64,000 nucleotides of DNA from Monocercomonoides exilis PA203 (lineage: Eukaryota; Protista; Preaxostyla): assembly GCA_001643675.2 (NCBI GenBank), contig LSRY02000009.1, forward strand, positions 372,001-436,000, written 5' to 3'. A program made the position numbers and the translations under genes. Below, one piece after another: positions 10,152 through 44,389 of this stretch. Below the pieces are notes generated by a model. The model saw only the letters and a program-made list of their open reading frames with translations. It was not told where the DNA came from and did no database searches. Positions within the stretch are counted from its first letter, which is position 1. Each line of letters starts with the position of its first letter.

Positions 10152-11151
10152 GGGTGATTTATAAACCCGAACATTTTCATAAACCCGGTTATTTTTTTTG
10201 TTCGTTGAAACAGAGTAAATACAACATGAAAATACAAAAAACAAACTTTTATATGTTTATTTTACTATTTAATGAAAGTACTAAAATTTTTTTGTTTCAA
10301 TTTTTGTTTTTGATGAAGATCAAAGGAATTTTTAATTTATTTTTGATCATTTGTTTTGTTCGTTTTGAATCAACTTTCATTTTTTGTTTGTTTTTAATTA
10401 CAAGGTCATAAAACATACATAATGAAGTTTTACTGTTCGAAATGTTTTATGTTTTTATCTATTTTTTCTATTGTTTTTCACATTTCATCGTTTTTGACAA
10501 AAAGTGTGAAAAAATGAAATTTTCTGAACTTATATTTGATTTGAAGAATCACTGATTACGATGTCATGTAAATAAGCTAACAATGCATTGATATTCTTCA
10601 TTATTAGTCATTTTAAATTTATTTGTAAACAAAATTAGTATTTTTATCATTTTCAATATTTGATGAGTGTAATGAAAACAACAACATTTCACAAATTTTT
10701 AACCCGGTATATGCTTTATGCAAACCTTTTTCTTTTCATGCACATCATATTTAATATGTAAAAAATATTGTACAACTCTCAATTTTCATTTTTTCATATT
10801 TTTTGTCAAAAACGATGAAATGTGAAAAACAATCGAAAAAATTAGAAAAAACAAAAAATATTTGAAACAATAAAACTTCGTTATGTATATTTAATGACAT
10901 TATACCTAAAAATTGACAGAAAAAGAAAGATAGTCCGAAACGGACAAAACAAATGATCAAAAATAAATTAAAAATTCCTTTGATCTTCATCAAAAACAAA
11001 AATTGAAACAAAAAAATTTTAGTACTTTCATTAAATAGTAAAATAAACATATAAAAGTTTGTTTTTTGTATTTTCATGTTGTATTTACTCTGTTTCAACG
11101 AACAAAAAAAATAACCGGGTTTATGAAAATGTTCGGGTTTATAAATCACCC
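10152..11151 (+). mobile_element. Foldback element family A, copy 1 (1000 bp; TA-flanked; ~370-bp arms)
   Basis: TA|GGGTGATTTATAAACCCG...CGGGTTTATAAATCACCC|TA. Near-identical copies at 13051 and 32307. Confidence 0.9.
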
Positions 11152-11611
11152 TATTAATTTACGGATTTGGATACATTGCCAAATATCCAGCAATCTTCTT
11201 CAAACACAGTGTCGTCAGATTTGAAAATGAAAGAAAAAAAAGAATCAAAAAAAAAAAAGAGAGAGAGAGAGACTATTCCTGAAACAACTGATGATGTTGA
11301 CGAACTTAACGATAGAAAACTGCCAGCTTACCTTCATCATTTCTTCCTTTATTTTCAATATCTTCTTTCTTCTTCTTCTTCTTCTTCTTCTTCTTCTTCT
11401 TCTTCTTCACATTCACACATATCTGAGAAATCATCATCTTCTTCACTGGTTCTTCCTTTCTGCTTTCAAATTTGATGAGATTCCAGATAATTAGAGAATA
11501 CTGAGGAAACCGGGGGAAGTGCACAAAGCTAAGCCAAAGAATAGAGAAGATGATAAAAGAGATGAGATATGAACGAGCGAGCAATGAACAAAGAGGAGAA
11601 CTTATTGCATA
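11152..11611 (+). repeat. Spacer S (460 bp), present three times: here, inverted at 12594-13050, and at 14051-14513
   Basis: The copies match except for one (TCT) unit (460/457/463 bp), which the 102/101/103-aa ORFs mirror. Confidence 0.9.
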
Positions 11612-12593
11612 GGGTTACACTTTTACTCTGACCTATATTTTTACCCCCACCCTTTTTTTTGTGGAGCTGGCTACAGCTTAATACAAGCTTGTAGCCAACA
11701 AAAAATAACTAGAAATGTTTATTTTAATAAATTTAAGTTATACAGAAAAAATTTTTTAACGAAAAATTTTTAACTTTGAGATCTCGGTATTTTTTAATTT
11801 TATTTTTTGATCATAAAATTGATGGTCTTTCCATGAATATAACATTCTGGAAGTTTTAAGCTACATCAACATTACACCTCATATCCTTTTTATTGTTTTT
11901 ATAACTTTTCACATTTCACAAATTTCTTTTTCACCTGTTTTCTCATTTCATCGACTTTTCGAAAAAATGAAATTATGTAAAGAACGGTGAATTTTAAGAA
12001 AAAATTTTTATATTATCCCAAATATATATTAAAATGTTAATTACGAAGATATTCAAAAAAGTTTTGCAAATTTGATTTCAAACAGAAAAATGAAAAACAT
12101 CAATTTCGGAATATTTGATTTTTTCAGCCAGTAACATTTTTTCTACAAAAAATTATATGTGTGTCCAACAATATATTGAGTTTAAAATGAGATGCAGCTC
12201 ACAAAATTTAAAAATTGTTTTTTTACACTAAATAATTTCATTTTTTCGAAAAGTCGATGAAATGAGAAAACAGGTGAAAAAGAAATTTGTGAAATGTGAA
12301 AAGTTATAAAAACAATAAAAAGGATATGAGGTGTAATGTTGATGTAGCTTAAAACTTCCAGAATGTTATATTCATGGAAAGACCATCAATTTTATGATCA
12401 AAAATAAAATTAAAAAATACCGAGATCTCAAAGTTAAAAATTTTTCGTTAAAAATTTTTTCTGTATAACTTAAATTTATTAAAATAAACATTTCTAGTTA
12501 TTTTTGTTGGCTACAAGCTTGTATTAAGCTGTAGCCAGCTCCACAAAAAAAAGGGTGGGGGTAAAAATATAGGTCAGAGTAAAAGTGTAACCC
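11612..12593 (-). mobile_element. Foldback element family B, copy 1 (982 bp; core inverted relative to copy 2)
   Basis: TA|GGGTTACACTTTTACTCTGACC...GGTCAGAGTAAAAGTGTAACCC|TA. Arms ~365 bp, unique core ~255 bp. Confidence 0.9.
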
Positions 12594-13050
12594 TATGCAA
12601 TAAGTTCTCCTCTTTGTTCATTGCTCGCTCGTTCATATCTCATCTCTTTTATCATCTTCTCTATTCTTTGGCTTAGCTTTGTGCACTTCCCCCGGTTTCC
12701 TCAGTATTCTCTAATTATCTGGAATCTCATCAAATTTGAAAGCAGAAAGGAAGAACCAGTGAAGAAGATGATGATTTCTCAGATATGTGTGAATGTGAAG
12801 AAGAAGAAGAAGAAGAAGAAGAAGAAGAAGAAGAAAGAAGATATTGAAAATAAAGGAAGAAATGATGAAGGTAAGCTGGCAGTTTTCTATCGTTAAGTTC
12901 GTCAACATCATCAGTTGTTTCAGGAATAGTCTCTCTCTCTCTCTTTTTTTTTTTTGATTCTTTTTTTTCTTTCATTTTCAAATCTGACGACACTGTGTTT
13001 GAAGAAGATTGCTGGATATTTGGCAATGTATCCAAATCCGTAAATTAATA

Positions 13051-14050
13051 GGGTGATTTATAAACCCGAACATTTTCATAAACCCGGTTATTTTTTTTGT
13101 TCGTTGAAACAGAGTAAATACAACATGAAAATACAAAAAACAAACTTTTATATGTTTATTTTACTATTTAATGAAAGTACTAAAATTTTTTTGTTTCAAT
13201 TTTTGTTTTTGATGAAGATCAAAGGAATTTTTAATTTATTTTTGATCATTTGTTTTGTTCGTTTTGAATCAACTTTCATTTTTTGTTTGTTTTTAATTAC
13301 AAGGTCATAAAACATACATAATGAAGTTTTACTGTTCGAAATGTTTTATGTTTTTATCTATTTTTTCTATTGTTTTTCACATTTCATCGTTTTTGACAAA
13401 AAGTGTGAAAAAATGAAATTTTCTGAACTTATATTTGATTTGAAGAATCACTGATTACGATGTCATGTAAATAAGCTAACAATGCATTGATATTCTTCAT
13501 TATTAGTCATTTTAAATTTATTTGTAAACAAAATTAGTATTTTTATCATTTTCAATATTTGATGAGTGTAATGAAAACAACAACATTTCACAAATTTTTA
13601 ACCCGGTATATGCTTTATGCAAACCTTTTTCTTTTCATGCACATCATATTTAATATGTAAAAAATATTGTACAACTCTCAATTTTCATTTTTTCATATTT
13701 TTTGTCAAAAACGATGAAATGTGAAAAACAATCGAAAAAATTAGAAAAAACAAAAAATATTTGAAACAATAAAACTTCGTTATGTATATTTAATGACATT
13801 ATACCTAAAAATTGACAGAAAAAGAAAGATAGTCCGAAACGGACAAAACAAATGATCAAAAATAAATTAAAAATTCCTTTGATCTTCATCAAAAACAAAA
13901 ATTGAAACAAAAAAATTTTAGTACTTTCATTAAATAGTAAAATAAACATATAAAAGTTTGTTTTTTGTATTTTCATGTTGTATTTACTCTGTTTCAACGA
14001 ACAAAAAAAATAACCGGGTTTATGAAAATGTTCGGGTTTATAAATCACCC
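13051..14050 (+). mobile_element. Foldback element family A, copy 2 (1000 bp)
   Basis: Same orientation and apparently the same sequence as 10152-11151. Confidence 0.9.
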
Positions 14051-14513
14051 TATTAATTTACGGATTTGGATACATTGCCAAATATCCAGCAATCTTCTTC
14101 AAACACAGTGTCGTCAGATTTGAAAATGAAAGAAAAAAAAGAATCAAAAAAAAAAAAGAGAGAGAGAGAGACTATTCCTGAAACAACTGATGATGTTGAC
14201 GAACTTAACGATAGAAAACTGCCAGCTTACCTTCATCATTTCTTCCTTTATTTTCAATATCTTCTTTCTTCTTCTTCTTCTTCTTCTTCTTCTTCTTCTT
14301 CTTCTTCTTCACATTCACACATATCTGAGAAATCATCATCTTCTTCACTGGTTCTTCCTTTCTGCTTTCAAATTTGATGAGATTCCAGATAATTAGAGAA
14401 TACTGAGGAAACCGGGGGAAGTGCACAAAGCTAAGCCAAAGAATAGAGAAGATGATAAAAGAGATGAGATATGAACGAGCGAGCAATGAACAAAGAGGAG
14501 AACTTATTGCATA

Positions 14514-15498
14514 GGGTTACACTTTTACTCTGACCTATATTTTTACCCCCACCCTTTTTTTTGTGGAGCTGGCTACAGCTTAATACAAGCTTGTAGCCAA
14601 CAAAAAATAACTAGAAATGTTTATTTTAATAAATTTAAGTTATACAGAAAAAATTTTTTAACGAAAAATTTTTAACTTTGAGATCTCGGTATTTTTTAAT
14701 TTTATTTTTTGATCATAAAATTGATGGTCTTTCCATGAATATAACATTCTGGAAGTTTTAAGCTACATCAACATTACACCTCATATCCTTTTTATTGTTT
14801 TTATAACTTTTCACATTTCACAAATTTCTTTTTCACCTGTTTTCTCATTTCATCGACTTTTCGAAAAAATGAAATTATTTAGTGTAAAAAAACAATTTTT
14901 AAATTTTGTGAGCTGCATCTCATTTTAAACTCAATATATTGTTGGACACACATATAATTTTTTGTAGAAAAAATGTTACTGGCTGAAAAAATCAAATATT
15001 CCGAAATTGATGTTTTTCATTTTTCTGTTTGAAATCAAATTTGCAAAACTTTTTTGAATATCTTCGTAATTAACATTTTAATATATATTTGGGATAATAT
15101 AAAAATTTTTTCTTAAAATTCACCGTTCTTTACATAATTTCATTTTTTCGAAAAGTCGATGAAATGAGAAAACAGGTGAAAAAGAAATTTGTGAAATGTG
15201 AAAAGTTATAAAAACAATAAAAAGGATATGAGGTGTAATGTTGATGTAGCTTAAAACTTCCAGAATGTTATATTCATGGAAAGACCATCAATTTTATGAT
15301 CAAAAAATAAAATTAAAAAATACCGAGATCTCAAAGTTAAAAATTTTTCGTTAAAAAATTTTTTCTGTATAACTTAAATTTATTAAAATAAACATTTCTA
15401 GTTATTTTTTGTTGGCTACAAGCTTGTATTAAGCTGTAGCCAGCTCCACAAAAAAAAGGGTGGGGGTAAAAATATAGGTCAGAGTAAAAGTGTAACCC
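14514..15498 (+). mobile_element. Foldback element family B, copy 2 (985 bp; TA-flanked)
   Basis: Same termini as 11612-12593. The core is the reverse complement of the core in copy 1. Confidence 0.9.
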
Positions 15499-17493: not shown

Positions 17494-19118
17494 ATGAAAT
17501 TGTTTTCTGGTTGCGATGCGTTTTTGAAAATTCAGTTGAATGACACATCAAAAAGAGTTACAGGTTTGTTATTGTTGTTGTATTTGAAACATGTTTGTTA
17601 CAATTTTTATCTTTTTTATTGAAGAATTGTTTTCTGAACTGGAAGATTGCGATGAAGAAGAACAGAAACAGAAAATCGAAGAAATGAATGAACAAATGGA
17701 AGAAATGAATAAGGATAAATTTGAGTCTGTATTTTCAGAAGAATTGTTCAACAAAATTCACCAAATGATTGAAGAAGAGAAACTTTCGATGCGAAATGCA
17801 ATTTTGTTGCTGAAACACATTGGATATTGCAATGTTCTGAAAAGCATTTGGATTTGTAGTTTTGAAAAATCTTTGTTGAACAAAAGATTTGAGAAGATGA
17901 TTATTGAAGAAGAAAAGAAAAAAGAAGAAAAGGATGAAAAGCATTTAGCTGATCTTTATGAATGCTTCATACCTTTGAGCTTCGATTTCGCACAAGGATT
18001 AATTTTAATGTGTGTATTTTGTCTTCTGAAAGTTGCATTGAAGAAAGAAGAAGAAGAGGAAACGCAAAAAGAAGTGGAAATGGCATTACTGGCTTTGAGT
18101 TCAATTCAATGTGTATGAGCATTTCAATTTCCTTTTTGGTATTTTTGATTTTTTCCTAATTTCTAAGGATGTGAAAAATGAGCTGTATGCGAATGGAATC
18201 AAAGAAATCATCCAATATCACCAGAAATGCGGCAATCTCACTCGTCTTGCGTATCAGTCTGCTTGGCTGTTTTTGATTTTTCGATCTTTTTACGATGAGG
18301 ATTTGGTAGCGGCCATTGTTAATGAACTTCATTTTGTGGAAGATGCAAGAAGAGAAATTGAAGATCTGTCAAAATGTGTGGATAGGAAGAGAAAAGAAGA
18401 AGAAAATGAAAAAAGAAGAAAAGAAACAAAAGAAGAGCTTCTTTTGATTCGATGGCTGCAAACGTTGATGGATTATTTTTTCGATTTCGAATTATGGAAT
18501 GAAGACTATTCTGTGATTATTGAAAGCATTGCAAGAGTATATGGAGAGGCAAGTGATCATAACAGAGAAATTCGCAAACAGTGCATTTATTTTTTTAAAC
18601 ATGCAGCAGAAAATTTTAATGTGAAAGTTGATGCTTTGCTGAGAGGCGGAGCTGTTGATGCTGTTTTGGAAGAGATTCATCAACAAACATTGGTCGATAC
18701 AATTTCACGTTATGCCCTGATATTTTGTGTGATTATTTCAGAAAGACTGAAAAAAGAGGAGGAAGAAGAGGAGGATGACGAAATAGAAGAAGAGAAGGTT
18801 GAAGAGGAGGAAGAAGAAGAGGAAGAGGAGAGAGACGAAGAGAAGGTTGAAGAGGAGGAAGAAGAAGAGGAAGAAGAGAGAGACGAAGAGAAGGTTGAAG
18901 AGGAGGAAGAAGAGGAGGAAGAAGAGAGAGACGAAGCGAAAAAAGATGAAATGGAAGAAGAGAAAAGAAAAGGGTTGAAAAGAAAAGTGCTTGAAAAGAT
19001 GGAAGAAGAAGGATACGAAGATGCCATCACAAGCTATCGTGGAATATTTTCTTTTCTTGGCAGAAAATATCTTTGTGGATTACCGTTGAATATTTCAGAT
19101 TATTTTGTGAGTATTTGA
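17494..19118 (+). CDS. Lineage-specific helical-repeat-like protein ('LFSELE...MEEEGYED' family), 3 exons
   Basis: Exons 17494-17563, 17625-18112 and 18168-19118 join in frame through GT-AG introns. Shares LFSELE, NLTRLxYQSAW and KMEEEGYED with the other two copies. Confidence 0.8.
18789..18932 (+). repeat. 48-bp coding tandem repeat x3 ([16 protein letters not shown])
   Basis: Units start at 18789, 18837 and 18885. Confidence 0.85.
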
Positions 19119-19699
19119 GGAAATGAGATTCGTTACAAATTGTGTCTCGGAAGTTCAATTTTTGATTTCTTTCTCTTTTTTCTTTCTTTTTCTTTCTTTC
19201 CTTTTTTCTCGCTCTCTCTGGTTTAATTTTAATTTTATTATTTTAATAATTTTTGTTATTTATTTTTCGATTCTTTTTTTATAAGATGGAGTTGGAATAG
19301 ATTGATTTATTCGAATGAAAATAGCTTTTACAAATTATCAATATTTATTTTTCATTAATACCTTTTATTGGAATAAAAAAAATTGATTGGAATGAAGACA
19401 GTCTTTTCAGAATAATTCTTAAAAAATTTATTTTCTAATATGTTTCAAGAAAATACATTTTTTTGTCAGTAAGTGCATTTGTTAATGAATCAGATATATT
19501 TGTTTTTAAAAACAAAACCAAAAAAAAAAAAAAAAACTTTAGATGAATAATTTACAAGATTTTTAGTTTATTTTTGATTAATAATTGCTGAAAAATCATG
19601 TTCTTCTTTTAATTACAACAAAAGCAATCGAAATAGAAAAGCACTTGGTGATAAAATATTATTGTTCCTTTCACAATGTTTGTTAATTCTTTTTTGTTA

Positions 19700-22045: not shown

Positions 22046-23503
22046 ATGAAATTGTTTTCTGGTTGCGATGCGTTTTTGAAAATTCAGTTGAATGACACAT
22101 CAAAAAGAGTTACAGGTTTGTTATTGTTGTTGTATTTGAATCATGATTGTTACAATTTTTATCTTTTTTATTGAAGAATTGTTTTCTGAACTGGAAGATT
22201 GCGATGAAGAAGAACAGAAACAGAAAATTGTTGAAATGAACGGACTCGTGGACTACATGAATGAAGACGAATACAAATCTGTTTTCACGATTGAGCTATT
22301 CAATAAAATAGATAAAATGATTGGAGAAAAACGAATTAATTTGAAAGCTGCAATTCATCTGTTGAAGCACATTGGCTATTGCAAGAAATTTAAAAACTTT
22401 CATTGCTATAGCTCTTTCCATTCTCTGCTGCCTAAAAGAATCGAGGAGATGATTGTTAAAGAAGAAGAGAAAAAAGAAGAAAAGAATGAAAGGCTTCTCG
22501 TCGATCTTTGCGAATGCTATGTAATGACATACCAGTGCATAATTCCAGACAGATTGATTGTGATTTGTTTGCCTTGCCTTTTGAATGCTGCTTCTAACAA
22601 AATGGAAAACGAAGAAACACGAAATGAAGTCGAAATGGTTCTTTTTTCTTTGAGTTTGATTGAAACGACAATGGTTTGAAATTACTTTTTCTTTATTTGC
22701 TTGGAGTTGCATTTATTTATTTTTATTAGAGAGTGAATACAGATATTTACCTGAATGAAATAATAGAAATCATTGAATATCACAAGGAACATCGGAATTT
22801 GACACGACTTGGTTATCAATCTGCTTGGAAGTTCCTCGTTCTAAGACTTCAGCGAGAAGGAGAATTTGAAGATGTCATTTTGAATGAGTTTCATTTTGTG
22901 AAAGAAGCAACAAGAGAATTGGATGAGCTGAGGGAATGTGTGAATTGGAAGAGAAAAGGAGGGAAGGAGAAAGAGGCGAGGAGAAGCGAAGCGAAAGAAG
23001 TGAACGTCATAATGGAATGGCTCAGAATGGTAATGGCTTATTTTCGTGAACGTCTATTTTTGGATGAAGAACATATTGAGCTGATTCGTTGCATTGTCAC
23101 TCTGTGCAGAGCAGCAAGAGAATATGAAAAAGAAATTGTTGGTGTCAGCTTTTTTGTTTTTAAAACAGTGGCAAAAATAAAACCAGTCTGTGTGGTTTGT
23201 TTGACGAAGAGTGGAGCAGCGAATGTTGTTTTGGAGGAAATTCAGCAAGCAACTTTGGAACACGACATGGCACATTATCATTTGAGATTCTTTTTGAAAT
23301 TATCAAAAACATTGAAATGGAAGATGGTTGATGAAATGGAAGAAGCGAAAAGAAAGGCAATAAAAATGGAGATGTTTGAAAAGATGGAAGAGGAAGGATA
23401 CGAAGATTGCATTGAGAGTTTTCATAAGATCTTTGATTTTCTGGATAGAAAATACTATGATGGTTTATCGTTGAATATTTCAGATTATTTTGTGAATGCT
23501 TGA
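22046..23503 (+). CDS. Lineage-specific helical-repeat-like protein ('LFSELE...MEEEGYED' family), 3 exons
   Basis: Exons 22046-22115, 22177-22673 and 22730-23503 are in frame. Paralog of 17494-19118. Confidence 0.8.
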
Positions 23504-24666
23504 GAAATGAGTAGAATGGGACTTTGTAACTCAAAATTTTTATTTTTTCTTTTTTCATCATTTCGCAAAATAGAAAACAAATACTCATTTGAATCTTTTA
23601 TGAAAGACTTTTTATTTTTTTAATTTTATAAAAATTTAACATATCAATAAAAGAAATTGGGAAAGAAAGAAAGTTGGAATTTTGTTTCGATTGTTTAACT
23701 TTCATCTTTTTTTTTTATAATCATTCCGCAAAGGAATAATTAACTCAGAAGTTCCATTGAAAAAGTTGAAAAAAATAGTCATGCGTATTCATCGTATTCA
23801 GGAGTATTTTCTCTTTTCTTATAAACAGGTCTGTGTTCTTCTGTTTCCTCCCAAATATCACCAAATTCAATTTAATTTGATTGAATCGTAGTTGAAAATC
23901 AAAACCTTGAGAACAAAAAGATGATTTTCAAGATGAATGTGAAAGCAAAGAAAAAATACAAAATCTTTGCAATTCGATGATCATTTGTCAGTTCACGACC
24001 ACAAATATTAACTTCCACTTTTCATCTATTTAATTGTATCTCCTTCCAATGTGAATCGACAAACAGAAATAATGGGGGGAAAATGACCACTGCCAGATAT
24101 TAATATGATGGAGAAAAAAATGTCTCGAAGAATAAAAAGGAGATTAAGAAATAGGGTGTATATTTTATCTTGACCTCAAAATTTTATCTCATCCCTGTTT
24201 TTTTGAAACATATTTTTGCTTTTTTGATTTGTGAAAAGGCTAAAAACAAAAACAAAATAAATAGACTTTCTAATATTTTTGTTTTTAAGAATTCTGTTAA
24301 AAATTTTTTTGAAATTTTTATTTTCAAAAAAATATTCAAAATTTTTATTATTTTAGGGGACAGATCAAAGATTTTCTGGTAATGAAGCCAATATTTCATA
24401 ATGAGCGTTGAAAGCCACAGCATCACAATTCTTCACTCCTATATTATTATTTTCACTTGTTTTTAACATAATCAATATAATTTTTTATCTTTTTTTCTCA
24501 TTTCACTGTTTTTGCTTAAAACACGATTTTCGGAACAAATATGAATTTGTGTAAATTATTAAGCACATAAAAAATAAAAACAAGGCGTTATTTATTGTAT
24601 ATTTTTATTTAATTCTGAAAAGAAAAAGAATTGGACAAGAATTTGAAGCGAAATGGAAGAACATAT

Positions 24667-24933
24667 GGAGCTAAATATTTCACTAAAGGCATTTTTATTT
24701 AATAATTATGCACTTTTCAATGACTATTTGAGATTAAAAAACACAAAAAAATGGTTCTTTTATTTGACATTCGTGAAATGTTGGAAAACTTTATGTTTTA
24801 ATTTCAACGATGCCTGTTAACTGATATGAAAATCAAAATTATTAAGAAATCTGAGAAAGCGATGAAAAGTTATGGGCGAAACAATTTTTTCATGCTTTGT
24901 GCATATAAAGCTTGAAAGTCCGTATTTTCACCC
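24667..24933 (-). mobile_element. MITE family I copy (267 bp; ATAT TSD)
   Basis: Reverse-complement homolog of 25109-25374. ATAT|GGAG...TCACCC|ATAT. Confidence 0.75.
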
Positions 24934-25108
24934 ATATGAAAATTTTGATCTGAGAATTGTTCGTCATATACAAATATTTTATTGTTTTTCCTTTGAGATA
25001 TCATTTCATTTCAAATTAGTTTTATTTCATATCATTAAATTTTCAAACAAATGGATGCATGTCTCTGAAATAATGCTTTCTGAAAAAATGTGTGAAATGA
25101 GAAAAAGT

Positions 25109-25374
25109 GGGGAAAAATACGGACTTTCAAGCTTTTTATGCACAAAGCATGAAAAAATTGCTTCGCTCATAACTTTGTTTCGCTTTCTCTGATTTTCAAA
25201 TAATTGGATTTGCATATCAGGGATCAGATATCATTGATTTCACAACATAAAGTTTAGTGACATTTCACGAATGTCGAAAAATGGAATCATTTTTATTGTG
25301 TTTTTTATAAAAAAGAATATATTAAAAGTGCATTATTTTTTATTGAAAATGCTTGAAAAGAAATATTTTTCCCC
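25109..25374 (+). mobile_element. MITE family I copy (266 bp; AAGT TSD)
   Basis: AAGT|GGGGAAAAATACGGACTTTCAAGC...AAATATTTTTCCCC|AAGT. Confidence 0.8.
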
Positions 25375-30400: not shown

Positions 30401-31663
30401 AATGTTCCACTATTATTTGAATTTATATATATTGGAAAACTGAGCCGCTTCCACGCATTGAATTACAATAATAAAATAAACAATTTGAAATCACTATTTT
30501 GTCCACGGGTTCCCAAAGAATAATTGCTTCCAGCACCATAAGAAGAACTTCTTCATCTACAGTTATCGAAAAACGAATTAACTCTGCATTCTTTCTGCCT
30601 ATAACTTAAGGATGTTCAAAGGATAATTGCTTCATTGATGTTCTGGAGATTGCTTAAGAATTTAATGATGCTTCTTTTGTCATTCGGTTGAATGAACAAA
30701 CACAATATTAATTTGATCAAAAAATGTAATAAAAACTGGATGTTTCAAGAAATTTGATATGATGTCCTAAATGAGTTCATACAATAATATTCATCTTGAA
30801 TAAATATATTTTTCTTAAGGAAGTTTGAAAGTGAAGAATCAAACAAATTTATAATGGATCGATTTTTTGATCTGAGGTGATTTTTCAAAAATTTTCTCCC
30901 ATTTGGTTGGTTTTTTGGGGTTTTGAGAATGATATTGATGGAAATATGTACCAAAATCAATGTGCAGTAATCATTATTATTTAATTGCCACGTGAAATAA
31001 TTCTTTTAATTCAGAAACGTGATTTCTGTTTATTATTATTATGGAAAAATATTGGTCTAATTTTTTGATTCAAAAATTTGAAAAAAAAATGATTTATCTG
31101 TAAAACAAACGGAAAAAAAATATTTTTTGTCAAAAAAGAAAAACGAACTTATTTCTATTCATTTATTCGGCATGACCTTCGATCATGGCATCTTACTGAT
31201 AAACCCCAAAACTTATTCAAAAATAATCTAATTTGGCCTTTTATTTTTCTAATATCTCTTTATTACTGTTTAAACTGTAATTGATTTTGAAGGAACAAAT
31301 CCATCATATGTTCTCACAAAAATTTAAAACGGTGGAGAATGCAGTTTTTAAAGGTTATAATAAAATTGCATTGTTTCTGAAACTAATAAATGATAATTTG
31401 CAATCAGGAAACAAATTTATTTGATTTAAAAGGCCTGGAACGTCTGTCATTGTGTTTTCATCAACATCAAAAAATATCATTTTTATTTTCTCATTTTTAA
31501 TAGGACAAAAGTAAAATTTAAGAAATCTTTAAATAAATGAATGAGGATCGTGGATGTGCTTCAGACCCTAAAGTATTTTAAATGTTGAAATTCATGCAAT
31601 TCATTTTTTCTTATTTCAACATTCTCATTTCATTATCTGCACAAAAAAAAAAAAAAAATAAAT

Positions 31664-32178
31664 GGGTGAAAATTCGGACTTTCAAGCTTTTTATGCTTTG
31701 TGCATAAAAAGCTTGTTTCACTTATAACATTATTAAACTTAAGTCAGATTACAAAATAAATATGATTTTTATATCCGGTATCATGCATCATTGATGAAAT
31801 GACAAAATGGTTTGTGACCTCACATGTTTTTCAAAAAATATATGGGTGATTCTTTTTGAAAAGTCACAAATGTTTAATTTTCAAATATATCAAAAATTTC
31901 ATATCTTGATCAAATTTCGGTTCCCGCTCATGCAATTTCACAGGAATGTGTTAAATAGCATTATCAAATTATGTCCTCCGCTTTGGTAAAGTTACATGAG
32001 CGGGAACCGAAATTTGATCAAGATATGATATTTTTGATTTATTTGTTAATTAAACATTTGTGACTTTTCAAAAAGAATCACCCATATATTTTTTTTTTTC
32101 AAAAATTTTGATCACAAAAAGTTCATCTAAGTTGCATAATATTTCAATGAAAATGCCTGAACTCAAATATTTTGTCCC
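31664..32178 (+). mobile_element. MITE family I copy (AAAT TSD) split by nested MITE H
   Basis: AAAT|GGGTGAAAATTCGGACTTTCAAGC ... AAATATTTTGTCCC|AAAT. The 3' part (32088-32178) aligns with 6810-6897. Confidence 0.75.
31844..32083. mobile_element. MITE family H (240 bp; ~90-bp TIRs; ATAT TSD)
   Basis: ATAT|GGGTGATTCTTTTTGAAAAGTCAC...TTCCCGCTCATG / CATGAGCGGGAA...GTGACTTTTCAAAAAGAATCACCC|ATAT. Confidence 0.85.
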
Positions 32179-32306: not shown

Positions 32307-33306
32307 GGGTGATTTATAAACCCGAACATTTTCATAAACCCGGTTATTTTTTTTGTTCGTTGAAACAGAGTAAATACAACATGAAAATACAAAAAACAAA
32401 CTTTTATATGTTTATTTTACTATTTAATGAAAGTACTAAAATTTTTTTGTTTCAATTTTTGTTTTTGATGAAGATCAAAGGAATTTTTAATTTATTTTTG
32501 ATCATTTGTTTTGTCCGTTTCGGACTATCTTTCTTTTTCTGTCAATTTTTAGGTATAATGTCATTAAATATACATAACGAAGTTTTATTGTTTCAAATAT
32601 TTTTTGTTTTTTCTAATTTTTTCGATTGTTTTTCACATTTCATCGTTTTTGACAAAAAATATGAAAAAATGAAAATTGAGAGTTGTACAATATTTTTTAC
32701 ATATTAAATATGATGTGCATGAAAAGAAAAAGGTTTGCATAAAGCATATACCGGGTTAAAAATTTGTGAAATGTTGTTGTTTTCATTACACTCATCAAAT
32801 ATTGAAAATGATAAAAATACTAATTTTGTTTACAAATAAATTTAAAATGACTAATAATGAAGAATATCAATGCATTGTTAGCTTATTTACATGACATCGT
32901 AATCAGTGATTCTTCAAATCAAATATAAGTTCAGAAAATTTCATTTTTTCACACTTTTTGTCAAAAACGATGAAATGTGAAAAACAATCGAAAAAATTAG
33001 AAAAAACAAAAAATATTTGAAACAATAAAACTTCGTTATGTATATTTAATGACATTATACCTAAAAATTGACAGAAAAAGAAAGATAGTCCGAAACGGAC
33101 AAAACAAATGATCAAAAATAAATTAAAAATTCCTTTGATCTTCATCAAAAACAAAAATTGAAACAAAAAAATTTTAGTACTTTCATTAAATAGTAAAATA
33201 AACATATAAAAGTTTGTTTTTTGTATTTTCATGTTGTATTTACTCTGTTTCAACGAACAAAAAAAATAACCGGGTTTATGAAAATGTTCGGGTTTATAAA
33301 TCACCC
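32307..33306 (-). mobile_element. Foldback element family A, copy 3 (1000 bp; arms homogenised)
   Basis: Same termini as copies 1 and 2, with the core in opposite orientation. Left flank is TT, right flank is TA. Confidence 0.9.
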
Positions 33307-33646
33307 TACAGCTTGTTTTGAATTTTCTTCTCTCCAATAGATCAAGATTATAATTTTGTAAAATGACAAATTTGTTCAACGCCAAGTCGATATTCAATTT
33401 TTTGATGAAATAAAATTATTTTGAATGATATTCTTTCAAACGTTTGAACAAATATAATTTTGTGAAGAAAAAAAACAATTATTTGCATATCACAGTACAA
33501 AAGAAAAGCGTTTGCTTTCATTTTTGATTTTATGAATGTGTGAAGTAATATTTGAAACGTTTTGTTCAAACTTCGTTAAAAAAACATATGAAGCAAACCT
33601 TTTTTCAATTTATCTTACGATAAAGGTTATGGATCAATAGAAAAAC

Positions 33647-36600
33647 ATGAGTTCAACGCCTTCTGCATCACAATTTGTTTATACACCAGAAACCGAAGAG
33701 AATCTGTGTGTTTTGTGTTACACCCCAATTGAGACATATTCAGTTGGTTTGCTATTTGTTGAGATTCAACATAATGCGTCATTTTTTTGACATTTTTCAT
33801 TGTAACTCAATAATGGATGATTGCAAATTATTTCCTGAAAATAAATGTAATTTTTAGGAGCATGCAACCACACTGATTGTTGTGCAGTGTGCACATATCG
33901 ACTGAGGAAGTTTATGAAACAGATAAATTGCCCAACATGTCGAGCCGAATTAAAGGCTGTCGTATTTACGAAAAATAAAGAAAAGCGCTTTGAAGTTTGT
34001 TATTTGTGAATTCATTTTACGGAAATATTTTATTTTTGTTTAAAACAACAGGAATATTCTGTTTCTTCATTTAAACCTGATGCAATTGACAAAGTGACGG
34101 GAATCTTCTATGAAGACACCGATTTGCAAGATCAAATCGATGAATGGAACAGTCCAACTTGTTCGATCTGCAAGGAAGTTTTCCCAACTATTCAATTACT
34201 TCAAGTTCATTTACGAAAAAATCATGGAAAAGAATTTTGGTATTAAAAATATAAATGATTTTTATTCATTTTCTGTTTGCGCATGCATTCTTAATATAAT
34301 AGTTTATTATGCTTAGAAAAAAGGCCGTTGTTTCTTTACGAACAACGATTATATACTCCGTTTGAGCTTCGTCAACACAACGATGGAAAACTGCAAAATG
34401 ATGCATCAGGAAATCATCCAATGTGCAAATTTTGCAACTCTTACTTTTTTGACACAGATGACTTCAGAAAGCACATGATCAGCGAGCACGAAAAGTGCTT
34501 TTTGTGCGAACGCAGAGGGGTATGCACAAACTTTTCATTGTTATTATTATTTTAATAATTAATGCGTATGCATAATAAATTTTCGATTATTGAAAAAATC
34601 AAAAAAAACACTATTTCTGCTTCAACATTTTGATGTTGTTATGATTTTTTGCAATGCTGCAATCATATCAATCAAACAATTAACCAAACAAACAAACATA
34701 TTCAAATATAAATATTCTGAATTCTGTTCTTCTTCTTCTTTAATCTTTACCGTTTTTTTTCCTTCACGATTTCCCTTTTCAACGCCTGCAGCTGCGAGAC
34801 GAGTTCTACATGTCGTACATGCAGCTGCAGATGCATTTCCGGCAGGCGCATCACCTGTGCACCCACCCCGACTGCCTGGCTGAGCGCTACATCGTCTTCG
34901 ACACTGCCCTCGAGCTGGTCTCCCACCGAATGGCACGCCACGGCACAGGCGAAGACGGCAGCAGCGGTGTTGGAGTTGGCGGGATGAGGAAGGGCAGGAG
35001 AGGAGAGGTGGTGATCGATATGGCGCTCCTCAGGGCTGCCGAGATGGAGGAGGAAGAGGAGAGGAGGAGGAAGAGGAGAGAAGGAGGCGAAGGAAGAGGA
35101 GGAGGGCAGAGCGGGCAGCGGGAAATAGAGCCGTCGCTGCTGTCGTCGCTGGAGTCTGATTATTCCGGTGTCGCAGGGAGAGAGGCAAGACAGGGAAACG
35201 AAGGGATTAAGAAGCTGTTCATGGATCCGTCAAAAGTGGATGTGAACTCGTTTCCTTCGCTTTCGACGCTGAACAAGAGAGAAGAGCCAGAGGAAGACGA
35301 GAACTCGTTCTGGGGCAGCAAAGGCGGGGCGAGGAGAGAAGGGCGGGAGAAGAAGAAAGGAGAGAGAAAAACAGGAGCGAGGCTTATACAGCAGGGGCAG
35401 CAAGGGCAGCAGTATTCACAGACAGCGTGGGGCAATGCAGCAGGAACAGCTGCTCTGGGAATGGGGGTGTCGAATATGAGGGCGATGTTGGATGATGAGA
35501 GAATGTTTCCTACACTGGGCGGAGGGAAAGCGAGAGAGAGAGACAGAGAAATGGCTGACTTGATGATGGAGCTTGTGAACAAGAAGGGGAAGAAGAGCAA
35601 AGCAGGAGCAGCAGGAAAGGGGAGCGAAGGGAAGAAGAAGAAAAAGAGTGGCGGGAGAGACGGGAGAAAAGGGAGGGGCAGAGGCTATGACGATGAAGAG
35701 GATGAGGAAGACTTTGAAATCAGCAGTGTCAACCTCGGCAGCAGCAGCAACCGCCGATTGGGTGGGTACTCACTCATGCCGATGATACAAGTGAAGTACG
35801 AGAACAGGAAGGCGCCAATGGCTCTTCTGCAGGCCAGCTCAGCTGCCAACAGCAGCGCCCAGGCGAAGAAGAAGAAGCAGCAGCAGAGGCAGAGGCAGGC
35901 TGAGGAGCAGCACCAGATGATGCTGAATGCAATGCTAGGCCCCTCTCGCTCATTCAAAGGAGACGATTCGCTCTTCCCTTCTCTCCCTGGCACAGCTGAT
36001 GCGCCGCTTCCACCAGTGAACTATCCGTCGCTGGCAGAGGCTGCAAGGGAGCAGAAGACAAAAGGAGGGAAGAAGGGGAAGAAGGGGAAAGGAGGAGCAG
36101 GAGCCAATGAAGGGCAGCAGAATGGAAAGAAGCAGCCACAACAGAATCAAAACCAGAATCAGAAAAAGAAGCAGAATCAGAAGCAGCCGCAGCATCTGAC
36201 ACCATTTGACTTCCCATCGCTGCCACTGGGTGCATCTCAGCACTCACAGGCAGTGAAACAGACATCCAGCCAGTTAAATCAGACAAATCAGTCAATTCAA
36301 TCAAAGAAACAACAACAGCAGCAATCAAAACAAGCTGTTCTGAATCAAAGCTCGAAGAAGAAGCAGCAGCAGACCAAGCAGAATGAAGCTAAGCCCACTG
36401 CACCTCGGTTTGTGGATGCAGGAAGAGCGCCACCTCCTCAGATTCTGCAGAGGATGATGAAGAAAGACGATGCAAACAATGTTAGCAATGCCAGTGTTAA
36501 TGCTAATGGTAGTTTGAGCTCTTCAAAGAGGAGCAGCAGCATCTATGTGGATGAAGAGGAAAGAAAATACTTTGCGCAGAAGGAGTTTGACATGTCATTG

Positions 36601-38538
36601 ACGAAGTCTGCGCAGCGGAGGCTGATTGCAGAAGGGCTGGAGAGGAGCCGAGAAAGAGAGATGGCAGCGACGGTTGGAGTGAAGATTGTGTCTGCTGCTG
36701 AAAGGAAACCAAAACAGAGCAAACAGAACCAGCAACAAGGGAGTGAGCAGAAGATGACATTGGAGGCAGATGCATTTCCTACGTTGCCTGTTGGAAGCGG
36801 TAAAAAGGGCAAAGATAAAAGCAAGCAATCAGAACAAGGGCACAAAGAGAGTGGCAAACAAGGCAAGAAGCAGCAGAATCAGCAGGAATTGCAGTATCCA
36901 CAAGCAAATCAGCATATTAGGTTCCAATGGAATCCTGAGTCTGAGTCACAATTTGAGAAGAAGAAGAGGCAGAGGCAGAAGGAGAAAGAGAGAGAAGAGA
37001 GAGAAGCGAAAGAAAAAAAGGAGAAATTGGCAAGATTGGCTGGGATGCCTATTGATGGGCCGTCTGTGGAGGCGATTATCTCAGAAATGGCAATGAAGAC
37101 ACAGGAAGAAGAGGAGAGAGAGAGAGAAAGGCAGAAGAAGGAGAAGGAGAAGGAGGAGAAGAAGAGGAGAAAGGAAGCTCAAAGGAATGCTCCTGTGCAG
37201 AAAGTGAAAATTTTGAAGAGGAACAGACAGGAAGAGGCAGAAACGAAGGAGGCAAAGGAAGAAGAGAAGAAGAAAGCTAAAGAGGAAGAAGAAGTGAAGA
37301 AGGTGAACGATGCCGAGGAAGAAGAGGAGGAGGAAGAAGAGGAAGAAGAAGAGGAAGAGGAAGAAGAAGAGGAGGAGGAGGAAGAAGAAGAGGAAGAGGA
37401 AGAAAACGACAGACGTCTCAACACACCACCGTTGGAAGAGCCATCATTTGCTCCGATTGGTTCTCTTGACATGCAATCGACATTTGCTCCTGTTCCTCGT
37501 TCGCCTCGTGTTGCTCTGTCAGAACTGACACAGTCGCCTGAGAAAGCAGAGCTGACTGCCAAATACGAAGCATTCATGGCACAGAGGAACAAAGCAGGCA
37601 GAATAGAAGGGAAAAAGGAGAAGGAGAAGGAGAAGGAGAAGGAGAAAGAAGAAATTGAAGAGGAAGAAGTGAAAGATGTTGAAGAAGCTGAAGAAGGAGA
37701 AGGAGAAGAAGGTGCAGTTTTGATGCCACCTCCAGGGCTTGAGGAGATGGATTATGAAGACAACGAAGAAGAAGAAGAAGGTAATGAAGAAGAGGAAGAA
37801 GAAGAGGAGGAACAACAGCAGCAGCGTTTCCAGCGTCCCTCTGATCCTCTTCCAACATTCACATCTTTCTCTTCTTTCTCTTCTCAATCTTCTTCTTCAT
37901 CTTCCTCTTCTCCATTCACTTACACCCCATCTTCATCATCCACAGGTCTTCCAATGACTTCATCATCTTCTTATTCCTCCTCCTCATCTGCTTCTTCTTC
38001 TTCTTCTTCTTCTTCTTCTTCCTATCTTGCCCCACTCACAATGCAGCAAGAGAGGAACTTGCTGCTTATCTCTAAGCTAAGAGCAATCCTCTTTGAGAAA
38101 GTGGGGGCACTTGCTGTGGTTGACTCTGGAGAATATGAAGAAGAAGAAGAGGAAGAAGACGATGATGAAGAAAGAGAAGGAATCGATGAAGAAGAGGCGA
38201 AAAGAAAGAGAGAAGCAAAAGCCGCAGCAAAAGCCGCAGCCAAACACTCGAGCACGTCAGTTGTGGATGTGGATGCAGAAGTGGAGGAGCTGTTTGACTC
38301 GTTCCGAGGGCTCTCAGCTGATCTGCGGGAGCATCTGATTGCGCCAGCTGAATATTTTGCATCTTTCATGCAGCTCTTTGGGAAGGAAGGGCTGTATGAG
38401 TGCTGGGATGATATGATTGATTTGCTGCCGGATTTGGCGCTGCAGGAGGAGCTGCAGAAGGAGAGGAAGAGATGGTTGATGAAGGAGAAGGAGAGGCTGA
38501 GGGCACTGGAGGAGGAGGAGGAGGATGATGAGGAAGAG

Positions 38539-38570
<32 letters not shown>

Positions 38571-39984
38571 AGAAGAGGAAGAGGAGGAAGAGGAAGAAGA
38601 AGGCAAAGAAGGAGAAGAGAATGCAACAGAAGAAATGAAAAAATCAACACATTCAGTGAAGAAAGAAGGCCAAACAGAAAATGCTGAAGCATCAAATGAA
38701 GAGAAGCAGCAACAACAAGAGGAGTTGAAGCAGTCGAACAAATCACTCAAGAAATCGAAGAAAGAACAAACAGAAGAAGAAGCAGTTGGCTCTTCTTCTT
38801 CTTCTTCTTTATCATCAAGCAAGAAGGAGAAGAAAGCCAGCACAGCCAGTGAAGATGGAAGTGAACAAACACAAACACAAACACAAACACAAAAGACAAC
38901 TGCAGAAAAGAAGAAGAAGAAGAAGGCGAAGAAGAGTGGAGGAGAAGGAGAAAGAGGAGAAGGAGAAAGAGAAGCAAATGAGAAACCGAAAGTGAAGTTG
39001 AGCCACGCTGAGAAGAGGAAGCTGAAAAGAGAGCAAGAAGAGAAAGAGAAAGAAGACGAAAGGGCGTGGAAGATTGACTTTGCTAAGTATGCACCAGCTG
39101 TTGTGGCATCTGCAATTCCGAAGGGAGCTATGCCAGACCTGGGAAGAGGAGGAAGAGAAGAAGGAACACATTCAGAAAGAAAGCCAGCTCCTCGTTTCCC
39201 AGCAGCTAATTCTTACATGTCATCTTCAAATACTTCATCTTCGTCGTCGTCGTCGTCATCATCATCTTCTTCTTCTTCTCGCTCATCCAAGCATCCATTT
39301 GCTCCAACCTCACAAGGCTTCTCTTCTGCATTCCCTTCTTTCCCACCCCCTCCTCCAGCTGGCACTGCTCAATCACAGAACAAACAGACACAACAAAAAC
39401 AGACACAACAGAATAAACAGCAGCAGAATAAACAAACACAACGACAACAAAAACAGTCTCAACAACAATCTCAACAAAAGCAGCAGAAGCAGAAGAAGCA
39501 AGGAGCATCATCTTCTTCCTCTTCTTCCTCTCTCTCTGCCCATCTGAAGTTCATCCCCACCAGCAATGTGGCTCCTCCTCGTTTTCTCTCTGGACAAACA
39601 TCATCACCTTCAGCTGGGAGTGCTGCTAATTCTGATGCTTTTTCTTCTCTTCAATCAAAAACACAAAAGTCTTCTTCTCCTGCTAATTTAACATCATCTT
39701 CACTTTCTTCTTCCTCTCCATCTCCTTCTTCTTCTTCTTCCTTCCCTTCATTGAATGCATTGAATGACCAGCAGAAGGGCTCAAAGAAGGCAAAGAGATT
39801 TGCCGGCGATGATTTTCCCTCTCTCGGCGGATCAACCTCAACTCAGCCAAAATCACAGCAATCCAATCAAACACAGCAAAATAAACAGAAAAAAGGGAAA
39901 AAAGATAAAAAACAAGAAAAAGTTGACAACTCCATCTCGATTGGAGAAGGGCTGATATCTGTGATGGTCACTAAGAATCGTTAA
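33647..39984 (+). CDS. ZNF598: ZNF598/Hel2-like RING E3 ubiquitin ligase (ribosome quality control), ~1,900 aa, 5 exons
   Basis: Spliced N-terminal RING CVLC...GACNHTDCCAVC...CPTCR, then C2H2-like fingers (CSIC..HLRKNH; FCLLCLEKRPLFLYEQ; HPMCKFC..HMISEHEKCFLC; HFRQAHHLCTHPDC). Many FPSL motifs and a PPPGL. C-terminal RNLLLISKLR...FRGLSADLREHLIAPAEYF...LLPD resembles the ZNF598 helical domain. Confidence 0.88.
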
Positions 39985-40070
39985 ACACTTCAACAAATGA
40001 AGTTTTTACTTCTTTGGAGCTGAAAAGATAATATATGTAAATGTATTCTTTAACCAAAAAAAAATAAGTA

Positions 40071-41130
40071 GGGTGGTTTTTTTATCCGGACATTTTTTTT
40101 ATCCGGACAAAAATTTAAATTTTAAATATCTCAACAAATATTCAATATTAATTTCCAGCAATTTGCACAGTTGTATGTTAGCATAAATGACATCGATTCA
40201 TATACAAATTTTTAACAGCAGTGTTGTATTTTTTTTGAAATAAATAATTTTTATTTTTGAAAATCCGACTTTTGATGAATTTTTCTATTTAAATAAAATG
40301 AGTTGGTTCATCTTTTATATACACAACTTATTTTTTCCATGATATAAACAATTCTGGTTATTTTTTATTTTCGGCAATTTGCTCGTTTAGACTGAATGGA
40401 AATTTGTCATTTTTGAAAAATCATTGTCAATGGGACACCTTAAAAAATATTTTTCATTAAATGCAGGAGCATCTAACTGAAACTAACACTTGCAGTTATA
40501 AATATAATTGTTATATATTATTTCCACAAAATTGTAATCGAAAATTATTCTACAATTATTTCATAATATTAACATTAATTGAATTTCTTTGAAATTGAAC
40601 ATTTATAATCATCTGAATTTTAAACAAATGAAGCTTTTGAAATCCCTACTGAATCATTATTAAATATTACGTAGTAGTAATTTTAAATAACTATTATATT
40701 TATAACTGCAAGTGTTAGTTTCAGTTAGATGCTCCTGCATTTAATGAAAAATATTTTTTAAGGTGTCCCATTGACAATGATTTTTCAAAAATGACAAATT
40801 TCCATTCAGTCTAAACGAGCAAATTGCCGAAAATAAAAAATAACCAGAATTGTTTATATCATGGAAAAAATAAGTTGTGTATATAAAAGATGAACCAACT
40901 CATTTTATTTAAATAGAAAAATTCATCAAAAGTCGGATTTTCAAAAATAAAAATTATTTATTTCAAAAAAAATACAACACTGCTGTTAAAAATTTGTATA
41001 TGAATCGATGTCATTTATGCTAACATACAACTGTGCAAATTGCTGGAAATTAATATTGAATATTTGTTGAGATATTTAAAATTTAAATTTTTGTCCGGAT
41101 AAAAAAAATGTCCGGATAAAAAAACCACCC
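40071..41130. mobile_element. Foldback element family C (1060 bp; ~440-bp apparently perfect arms; TA-flanked)
   Basis: TA|GGGTGGTTTTTTTATCCGGACATTTTTTTTATCCGGACA...TGTCCGGATAAAAAAACCACCC|TA. Core ~40511-40690. Confidence 0.9.
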
Positions 41131-41305
41131 TACTTATTTTGTCTTTATTAAATTATTCAATTTTTGAATTATATAACATGTAGCACATACAATTTAATGT
41201 GGAATGTTTTTTTATTTACAGTATTGAATTATTTTACGTGTATCAAAAAAGGAAAGATAATGATCAAAAAAAACTTCTAAGCAACCATTATCATTTAATT
41301 TAAAT

Positions 41306-42711: not shown

Positions 42712-43273
42712 AATATAAATAAAAAATAAAAAAAATTATTTTCTTTTCTTTTTTTTAAGCAAGAGTGAAAGGTGGAATGAAAGATAAAACATTGTCAGAA
42801 AAAGTCTCTCTGCTCCACTGCAACGAAGGACATGCACATCATTTGAATATTGTTATTTTTAATAACAAATCTTATGTTTAGAATTCGGAGAGCTTTAATT
42901 ATTTTTTCTTCATAAGTTTTTTGGTAACAAGTGATATTTTGGCTGAAGAGTTTGTGAGTTATGATTCATTTTGAAATCGTCTGCGTTTCATTTTAATGTC
43001 ATTTCATCTTTTTGATGAATAATTATTAGTTTTTTGCGGAAACTAAGGAACGAGAATGGTGCAGATTTTTTGCATTTGGGGAAAAATTCTACCATTTATG
43101 AAAAAATCTCCGATTTGCTCCAAACTTTTTCTTCTGTCATTTCATTATGAATCTTTCATTCTCATTCTAAAAAATACAGAAAAAAATAAAAAATTAGAAA
43201 AATATAAGAAAGAATGATGTGAAACAAAATTTTGAAATCCAAAAAGACGTGTCATATTTTAGTTCAGAAAGTG

Positions 43274-43304
<31 letters not shown>

Positions 43305-43410
43305 GGATAAACCCTCCTCAGAGATAGAATACCTGCGTATCGAATAACAGTCAAGCCATTACTCGAGCACTACAAACGATAATAACGAAATTGTTTTCGG
43401 AAATAATATA

Positions 43411-44389
43411 GGGTCATATTTTTATTAGTACCCCGTTTTTTATTAGATCCTAAATTTTTTTTCTCAAATTGCTTCATATAGAAGCTTATACGCAATGAGT
43501 ATAATTTTAAAACAAATAATATATTATTATAAGGTTGTATACCAAATATTTTTGAAAATCATTTCTTTAGATAAAAGATCTGAATTTTTTAAGATTTATT
43601 TTTTGATCAATGTTTTGCTCGTTTCTCCATGAGTTTTTGAAACCGAGTGTTTTCCTTGTTGGCATTGTTTTTGAACTTTTCTTTTTAACATTTTTGATTA
43701 TTTTATAACATGAAAAACTCTTTTTTTTCACTAGTTTTCACACCTCTCCTTTTTTTCGTAAATCGATAATATCAATAAAGGAAATTGTTTTTAATAAGAT
43801 TGCTTGTTTTTCAACGATGCATTATCTCATGTAATGTTATATATTTAAGCTTTCTTTGAAATTTATGTGTGTATGAAAAATAAAACGAGAGATACAAAAT
43901 ATCATCTTTTTCATTTTCTGATATAAATACTTTTTAATTCAATTTTTCATCACATTTATTATTTGACATACTAATTTGCAAATCATGCACGTATGATTAA
44001 TTCAAAAAATAACAACATATTACTTCAAAATTTCAGTTTTACGAAAAAAAGGAGAGGTGTGAAAACTAGTGAAAAAAAAGAGTTTTTCATGTTATAAAAT
44101 AATCAAAAATGTTAAAAAGAAAAGTTCAAAAACAATGCCAACAAGGAAAACACTCGGTTTCAAAAACTCATGGAGAAACGAGCAAAACATTGATCAAAAA
44201 ATAAATCTTAAAAAATTCAGATCTTTTATCTAAAGAAATGATTTTCAAAAATATTTGGTATACAACCTTATAATAATATATTATTTGTTTTAAAATTATA
44301 CTCATTGCGTATAAGCTTCTATATGAAGCAATTTGAGAAAAAAAATTTAGGATCTAATAAAAAACGGGGTACTAATAAAAATATGACCC
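43411..44389. mobile_element. Foldback element family D (979 bp; ~350-bp arms; TA-flanked)
   Basis: TA|GGGTCATATTTTTATTAGTACCCCG...CGGGGTACTAATAAAAATATGACCC|TA. Arms are 43411-43762 and 44038-44389. Confidence 0.9.

Follow-up and report, generated by a model that had tools for sequence, protein, structure and literature searches.

Non-autonomous one-kilobase elements of Monocercomonoides exilis are probably passengers of a GGG-ended DD35D pogo clade

The 1-kb elements in a 64,000-nucleotide stretch of Monocercomonoides exilis PA203 DNA (contig LSRY02000009.1, positions 372,001 to 436,000; hereafter the window) are very probably large, MITE-like, non-autonomous passengers of one DD35D pogo clade with GGG...CCC ends, a reading that takes in the copying between their arms, the swapping of their ends, and their size. 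In this genome, GGG...CCC ends and TA flanks are common to two classes of element, non-coding ones of ~1.0 kb and transposase-encoding ones of ~2.0 kb. Because their ends are those of 2-kb pogo elements, the 1-kb elements are a known kind of element and not a new transposon class; the original prediction had suggested a novel class, whereas the partners belong to a described superfamily. The relevant features of the window are as follows.

10152-11151, + strand: A1, non-autonomous foldback of 1000 bp with 371-bp arms, a 258-bp core, and TA flanks
11152-11611, + strand: spacer S, copy 1, part of an inverted triplication, TA flanks included
11612-12593, - strand: B1, 982 bp, inverted copy of B2
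12594-13050, - strand: spacer S, copy 2, inverted
13051-14050, + strand: A2, 1000 bp, identical to A1
14051-14513, + strand: spacer S, copy 3
14514-15498, + strand: B2, 985-bp non-autonomous foldback of family B
24154-25703, strand not given: E, 1550 bp, a 1-kb non-autonomous element with asymmetric ends and two MITEs inside
24668-24935: first MITE nested in E, ~270 bp, with a 4-bp ATAT duplication, from a different, short GG-ended group
25109-25375: second MITE nested in E, ~270 bp, with a 4-bp AAGT duplication
32307-33306, - strand: A3, 1000 bp, recent sister of A1, arms 99.2% identical, TT on the left and TA on the right
40071-41130, strand not given: C, 1060-bp foldback whose body belongs to a second, unrelated lineage
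43411-44389, strand not given: D, 979-bp foldback, its 352-bp arms matching perfectly around a 275-bp core

The element positions and lengths first reported hold on recheck, as does most of the shared architecture. All of the window elements A to E have GGG ends (the right end of E reads GGGC), TA lies on either side of each with the sole exception of the TT to the left of A3, and the arms and cores of the A to D copies in the window remeasure at 352-447 bp and 166-275 bp, respectively. The paired motifs inside each end generally start 17-19 bp apart, as had been described, except at the right end of E, where the spacing is 13 bp. Folding of D gives z = -67 relative to shuffled sequences. E had been presented as a foldback with two nested MITEs; the MITEs are confirmed, but E lacks a foldback structure, because its two halves scarcely align (score 51, controls reaching 40 at most). 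Without both MITEs, E measures 1007 bp instead of the 1009 bp originally given, and its copies in the genome are mostly 1009-1011 bp. A 132-aa open reading frame in A, which begins inside the TIR and is without support, was treated as spurious.

We searched the M. exilis genome by end motifs, and the size data accordingly describe end-motif matches and omit truncated or diverged copies. Among the 108 paired A-D ends, 64 span 888-1065 bp, 29 span 2009-2058 bp, and none falls below 880 bp; family B has at least 16 paired copies across the genome, mostly of 982-992 bp. Reversed-pattern controls returned 0-1 matches, compared with 42-212 for the real patterns, which excludes chance. The anticipated narrow class near 1 kb is thus present, accompanied by the 2.0-kb class. 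The 1-kb elements are multi-copy, uniform in length, and located at independent insertion sites. Since 888-1065 bp exceeds the strict MITE size limit (under about 800 bp), we file them as large MITE-like non-autonomous elements, and part of the 35% of the M. exilis genome recorded as unclassified repeats (PMC8767320) is now classified.

The 2.0-kb elements encode a two-exon DD35D DDE_1 transposase (pogo, IS630-Tc1-mariner), the exons having been found by reference search and the full-length proteins being database entries. End types A, C, D, and E each also bound such elements, with which the 1-kb elements share the terminal 26-57 bp, including the family-specific motif pair noted earlier, and the TA flanks. 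The C ends match 2.04-kb DD35D elements (L062-L065), the D ends match 2.01-kb DD35D elements (L066-L070), and the 2.0-kb partner of E encodes P0015, with E-ended 2-kb pairs enclosing P0015 and PF03184 matches. DDE_1 (PF03184) matches lie above the cut-off (E = 1.9e-14 and 3.8e-15), and the A, A2, C, C2, D, F, and P0015 proteins all have a triad spacing of 35. The partners therefore have the DDE_1 domain, DDxD triad, and TA duplication of the pogo superfamily, in which TAA and TAAA duplications also occur. In a tree built without named reference families, the GGG-ended transposases form one clade with support of 99/99, and the top matches of an AlphaFold model of the transposase are Mos1 transpososomes. 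A Pfam search of the partner transposases gave no match to an N-terminal HTH DNA-binding domain of the HTH_psq, HTH_Tnp_Tc5, or CENP-B type; the model has a helical N-terminus, ~400 columns align to Mos1, and distant homologs carry PF05225. A PDB sequence search gave no match. Homologs beyond M. exilis are 23-33% identical, and two metagenome proteins reach ~51%. Autonomous copies have open frames and reach 99.6% identity to one another, in keeping with the diversified, recently active DNA-transposon group that had been proposed.

By analogy with Tc1/mariner biochemistry, the transposase would bind the motif pair, excise the element, and paste it into TA, duplicating the TA, and the family-specific motif would decide which transposase moves which passenger. 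The four transposase/end pairs, with their different predicted binding motifs, form a set for tests of binding specificity and also suit testing of the size constraint of 0.9-1 kb long suspected for ITm passengers. The 1-kb elements of types A, C, D, and E lack coding capacity and have their TIR and TSD in common with an autonomous element; no such partner turned up for B, which counts against the pogo-passenger reading. The nine long or unpaired B-end loci that we read (L071-L079) proved in every case to be non-coding copies of B, some of which carry nested insertions, and a looser end pattern and the P0010 map gave no B-ended 2-kb element.

Behind the shared ends lie two old body lineages, one comprising A, Ac, B, D, and E and the other C; for D and E, the bodies of one copy each were sequence-checked. 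The families had been thought to differ in internal sequence, which holds only in part: the arms of A, B, D, and E, like those of Ac, are distantly but colinearly homologous in a profile search. The same body is also found with the ends of different families. We lean slightly toward a length of ~1 kb being favored for transposition, with the foldback shape probably not required, as the asymmetric E indicates. Our fuller account is offered tentatively: one ancient 1-kb passenger lineage, derived from none of the autonomous elements, may have run through the whole GGG-ended pogo radiation (transposases down to 45% identity), with arm-to-arm copying retuning both ends together and a ~1-kb end-pairing optimum fixing the size. 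Such passengers would have outlasted the radiation of the transposases by adjusting their ends or exchanging them for others.

It is quite plausible, if short of probable, that the 1-kb length instead reflects inheritance without selection, the two founders having been ~1 kb by chance and indels being rare. The homology of the A, Ac, B, D, and E arms leaves only two independent origins, and A copies that are 15% apart differ in length by only a few bp, both as inheritance would have it. The unrelated body C, however, is also 1.04-1.06 kb, and in the other lineage, length has been kept despite divergence almost past detection, while E lost its symmetry. Moreover, the 240-270-bp MITEs of this genome carry other ends and 4-bp duplications, and mariner passengers in Drosophila (PMC4161770) and Rhodnius (PMC4678618), for which a size constraint has been proposed, independently converge on 900-970 bp. 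Those mariner passengers are likewise non-coding and confined to a narrow size range near 1 kb, and some of the lineages have long arms. Unlike the M. exilis bodies, which match their partner in the terminal 26-57 bp only, they are fully homologous to 1.3-kb autonomous parents, and one M. exilis body lineage is spread over transposases just 45% identical. The M. exilis class, constant in size, with arms that copy each other and a long ancestry of its own, is a useful natural test of why passengers of this kind hold to a single length.

We consider it rather unlikely, though less so for a very ancient origin, that the 1-kb elements are old, decayed deletion or rearrangement derivatives of autonomous elements in which the 5' end was copied onto the 3' end. 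Drosophila mariner MITEs arose by just such copying (PMC4161770), and the 350-370-bp arms are close in length to the 345-bp autonomous leader. Yet neither arms nor cores have an nhmmer or tblastn match to the autonomous interiors, although this leader is their best-conserved part (86-92% among the A and C families). An Rfam search of the leader returned chance matches only.

Within individual copies, the arms evolve in concert. They are at least 98% identical in 34 of 45 copies, compared with ~10% difference between copies, and 10 of 17 A copies carry 17-30 copy-private changes common to both arms. The left and right arms of A1 are unlike in one tract (element positions 209-318), and A3 equals A1 apart from this tract, where it carries the version of the other arm. 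Template switching or arm-to-arm conversion would overwrite one arm with the other and would sometimes run on into the flank; the flanks are inverted in some foldback copies, over ~10 bp in C.

Foldbacks also lie at the centers of inverted duplications and of the triplication at 10152-15498. Because A1 equals A2, B1 matches B2 perfectly in reverse complement (0 mismatches), and spacer S is present three times (+,-,+), these elements represent one inverted triplication and not separate insertions; the A and B copies originally counted do exist, but they are not independent, and the counts are inflated. A double template switch would produce the order A-S-B'-S'-A-S-B, the first switch being centered in B1 and the second in A2, necessarily within arm positions 1-208. 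DUP-TRP/INV-DUP and ODIRA inverted triplications by template switching (PMC11293582, PMC10766183) are alike in that both A-S-B'-S'-A-S-B junctions lie within inverted repeats; here, transposon arms serve as the inverted repeats, and just 5.3 kb is involved. The elements also seed inverted duplications and a triplication and shape local genome structure.

It is improbable that the near-perfect arms, inverted flanks, and triplication are artifacts of Nanopore assembly and polishing. This Nanopore assembly went through ten rounds of Pilon polishing (PMC8767320), in which some differences between arms could have been lost, and the three S spacers differ by indels in a simple repeat only. An artifact is difficult to reconcile with the private changes present in both arms or with the 110-bp divergent tract that A1 retains and its sister A3 lacks. 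In addition, a 2016 contig covers the B core plus 32 bp of each identical arm before it breaks off, which is what a de Bruijn graph should give when the arms are identical in the reads, and the spacer contig has ~3x the depth of its unique flanks in run X2, a depth that, as the tool warns, is no copy number.

Of 51 insertion sites, 40 read TA..TA, in support of the proposal that TA is duplicated. At two paralogous empty sites, the best alignment has a single TA, although these paralogs are diverged (71-76% identical) and the score margins small, which weighs against the pogo-passenger reading. Target duplications are 2 bp only, sites in AT-rich repeats apart. Given the partner transposases, the tallied duplications, and the empty sites, we reject the idea that TA belongs to the element ends. 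A Mutator/Foldback-type or other non-ITm origin, with an atypical TA duplication and a different transposase, is very improbable and already largely refuted. In its favor, MULE and Foldback elements likewise have long arms and GGG-like termini, the 1-kb bodies show no match to the interiors of pogo elements, and no partner was found for B. Against it, four of the five end types have DD35D DDE_1 elements delimited by the identical terminal 26-57 bp with the motif pair, no 8-11-bp duplications occur among the insertion sites tallied, and no MULE transposase lies between the same ends, the 2-kb elements read or mapped encoding DDE_1. Because the partners are DD35D pogo-type, in which TA is the standard target duplication (PMC7386202), the TA duplication is ordinary, and the Mutator/Foldback link once suggested is unneeded.

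In the literature consulted, neither these families nor GGG ends are described, and there is no account of Monocercomonoides mariner/pogo elements. The original prediction was to be refuted if the partners fell in a family already described with these ends; this is nearly the case, as the superfamily is described, although we met no description of the families and their GGG ends. Pogo ends mostly start with CAG, CCG, or ACG. Galileo belongs to the P superfamily, not pogo, and the target of Tc4 is TNA; to our knowledge, neither Tc4/Tc6 nor Galileo has GGG ends or such a 1-kb class. Foldback structure is nevertheless shared with Drosophila Galileo (PMC4168063), which promotes rearrangements, and with C. 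elegans Tc4/Tc6. The pogo Fot/Fot-like and Passer subfamilies (Gao et al. 2020, PMC7386202) resemble the partners in DDE_1, DD35D, TA duplication, TIRs of ~30-45 bp, and 2-kb length; they differ from them in that the M. exilis elements have GGG termini (unmentioned there), no Pfam HTH detected, and one intron. The supplements of that study that were consulted do not name Monocercomonoides (PMC7386202). The present findings add a GGG-ended DD35D pogo clade, with members apparently intact and recently active and with relatives in metagenomes. Bogo and BogoMITE of Blepharisma (PMC9942856) likewise pair a protist DD35D pogo with a non-autonomous partner of narrow length and shared TIR, but they have a TAA duplication, CTC ends, and a 389-bp MITE without long arms.

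The eight GGG...CCC elements of the window were recovered where the original prediction had placed them, with TA flanks apart from TT on the left side of A3; the arms of families A-D measure 352-447 bp, and the terminal motif pair has a spacing of 17-19 bp. The A and B copies of one cluster had been counted as separate elements, but A2 is identical to A1, B1 and B2 are exact reverse complements of each other, and a ~460-bp spacer (S) between A and B elements is present three times, in orientations +, -, +. We therefore read this cluster as a single rearrangement:

10152-15498, inverted triplication of an ancestral A-S-B

Element E had been described as a foldback as well; its two halves barely align, so that it is not one. 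Two MITEs of ~270 bp are nested in it, each with a 4-bp duplication, and E without both measures 1007 bp. The view that the families have different internal sequences holds for C, whose body was separate from the others in profile searches, but not for the arms of A, B, and D or the right-hand part of E, whose homologous stretches lie at corresponding distances from the ends (B to E, 4e-16; A to B, 5e-5; B to D, 1.5e-4; shuffled sequences, ≤8 bits; D and E bodies represented by one copy each).

Searches of the genome (82.3 Mb in 101 contigs) with the terminal motifs returned 42 to 212 matches per motif, against 0-1 for reversed controls. The paired A-D ends fall into two size classes, 888-1065 bp (64 of 108) and 2009-2058 bp (29 of 108); the remaining 15 are of other sizes, those read held nested insertions or internal duplications, and no pair among the 108 was shorter than 880 bp. 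Among the matches listed, E ends paired at 989-1011 bp in 13 cases and at 1994-2026 bp in 11. The search for long transposase-encoding copies succeeded for A, C, and D ends: these 2-kb elements have TA flanks, TIRs of ~30-45 bp, and terminal 26-57 bp in common with the 1-kb elements, and their transposase, encoded in two exons, has a DDE_1 domain and the triad DD35D. The transposase P0015 has matches inside the E-ended 2-kb pairs, two of them without stops; genome searches found no B-ended autonomous partner. The best structural matches of the AlphaFold model of transposase P0003 (pLDDT 78) are Mos1 transpososomes. Autonomous copies reach 99.6% identity and have therefore been recently active.

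One clade of our tree (99/99) unites the GGG-ended transposases with two metagenome proteins; DD35D families from M. exilis with C-beginning ends stand apart from it (100/99). We conclude that a pogo clade with GGG ends very probably has the 1-kb elements as its non-autonomous partners. Few IS630-Tc1-mariner elements are known to have GGG ends. Fot/Fot-like elements combine DD35D with TA, TAA, or TAAA duplications, and Passer combines DD35D with TA (Gao et al., PMC7386202). Our literature search found no publication that treats pogo or mariner elements of M. exilis. A further GGG-ended autonomous family (F) lies at L077:1-1933, and P0010 and P0016 represent other families of the clade. The genome holds 732 candidate places for PF03184, and loci L036-L060 carry more DD35D families of 2.2-2.8 kb with ends starting CCCTTG, CCATCG, or CAATG.

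In Drosophila, the lengths of mariner passengers concentrate at 900-970 bp, long TIRs are present in seven of them, and their size has been proposed to be constrained (PMC4161770); Rhodnius passengers follow the same 900-970-bp pattern (PMC4678618). Whereas those passengers are homologous to their parents along the whole length, the M. exilis 1-kb elements are not. Bogo/BogoMITE is a DD35D pair in a protist in which the MITE is short (PMC9942856). For the M. exilis elements, we lean slightly toward selection on length.

No match between arms or cores and autonomous interiors was found with nhmmer or tblastn. Bodies and ends also occur in swapped combinations: five loci (L092, L096, and L098-L100) carry A-type bodies, 72-77% identical to A, with C-type ends (Ac copies), and L022 carries a C-type body, 79-82% identical to C bodies, with A-type ends. 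Because A and C transposases are only ~41% identical at fourfold-degenerate sites, far below the 75-79% of these body pairs, the sequence comparison favors later end exchange over strict co-divergence. Autonomous left ends are themselves mosaics of A-family and C-family sequence, and the transposases spanned by the A, B, D, and E bodies are 45% identical.

Copies of A diverge by ~11%, yet in 10 of 17 the two arms are 99-100% identical, with 17-30 copy-private changes present in both. The same pattern is seen in 12/16 B copies, 7/7 C-type bodies, and 5/5 Ac copies, and the evidence that arms evolve in concert within copies is good. All 28 positions that differ between A1 and A3 lie inside one 110-bp arm tract, and several copies have inverted flanks reaching from 45 to at least 150 bp. 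Switching between both arms during replication or repair would be the simplest common cause. Such a switch would overwrite one arm and could continue into flanking DNA, leaving inverted flanks; a double switch, the second limited to arm positions 1-208, could produce the triplication. Three observations argue against a polishing artefact: A1 keeps its private arm tract, a 2016 contig stops 32 bp inside each B arm, and spacer depth is 221-243 against 67-81 in unique flanks (sequencing run X2; contig depth is a rough guide, and all runs come from one sample).

TA flanks both sides at 40 of 51 distinct insertion sites. Two empty-site paralogues (L070 versus L046 and L023 versus L004) align without gaps and reach their highest score with a single TA retained; being just 71-76% identical, they support TA duplication without being conclusive. 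Unlike this class, the 240-270-bp GG-ended MITEs of the window are flanked by duplications of 4 bp, mostly AWWT (ATAT, ATTT, AAAT, and one AAGT), and are a different group. Related pieces lie at ~6630-6900 and 31663-31839. These MITEs and two palindromic elements with other ends are as follows:

8067-8322, short GG-ended MITE
31844-32083, short GG-ended MITE
24668-24935, short GG-ended MITE
25109-25375, short GG-ended MITE
5573-6251, palindromic element of ~680 bp
7635-8034, palindromic element of ~400 bp with a tandem motif pair, starting TA/CAGAT

Nesting is common: loci L021, L020, L080, and L083 hold a hAT element in an A copy, a Harbinger-like element in an autonomous copy, two mutually inverted Merlin-like frames in a C copy, and a B copy whose TA also belongs to a C-copy end.

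In the autonomous elements, the 5' leader contains a hairpin:

L012:338-432, G+C-rich nested hairpin directly after a TATA-like box
L011, L014, L018, L061-L063, L066, L070, L077, equivalents of this hairpin

Leader identity is 86-92% among the A and C families, where synonymous sites are near saturation. The hairpin (folding z = -5.7; no match in Rfam) has two-sided changes at 7 of 20 pairs, in just 2-3 independent lineages, and may be a regulatory RNA structure.

Other genes of the window, the Arp2-like and kinesin-like ones named from sequence reading alone, are:

~3040-4478, minus strand, Arp2-like gene
8604-9721, 17605-19127, and 22157-23511, three paralogues from an expanded M. exilis family of acidic helical proteins
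34810-39984, plus strand, serine-/glutamate-rich ORF, 1724-aa protein
53215-62673, minus strand, serine-/glutamate-rich ORF, kinesin-like motor of 3152 aa
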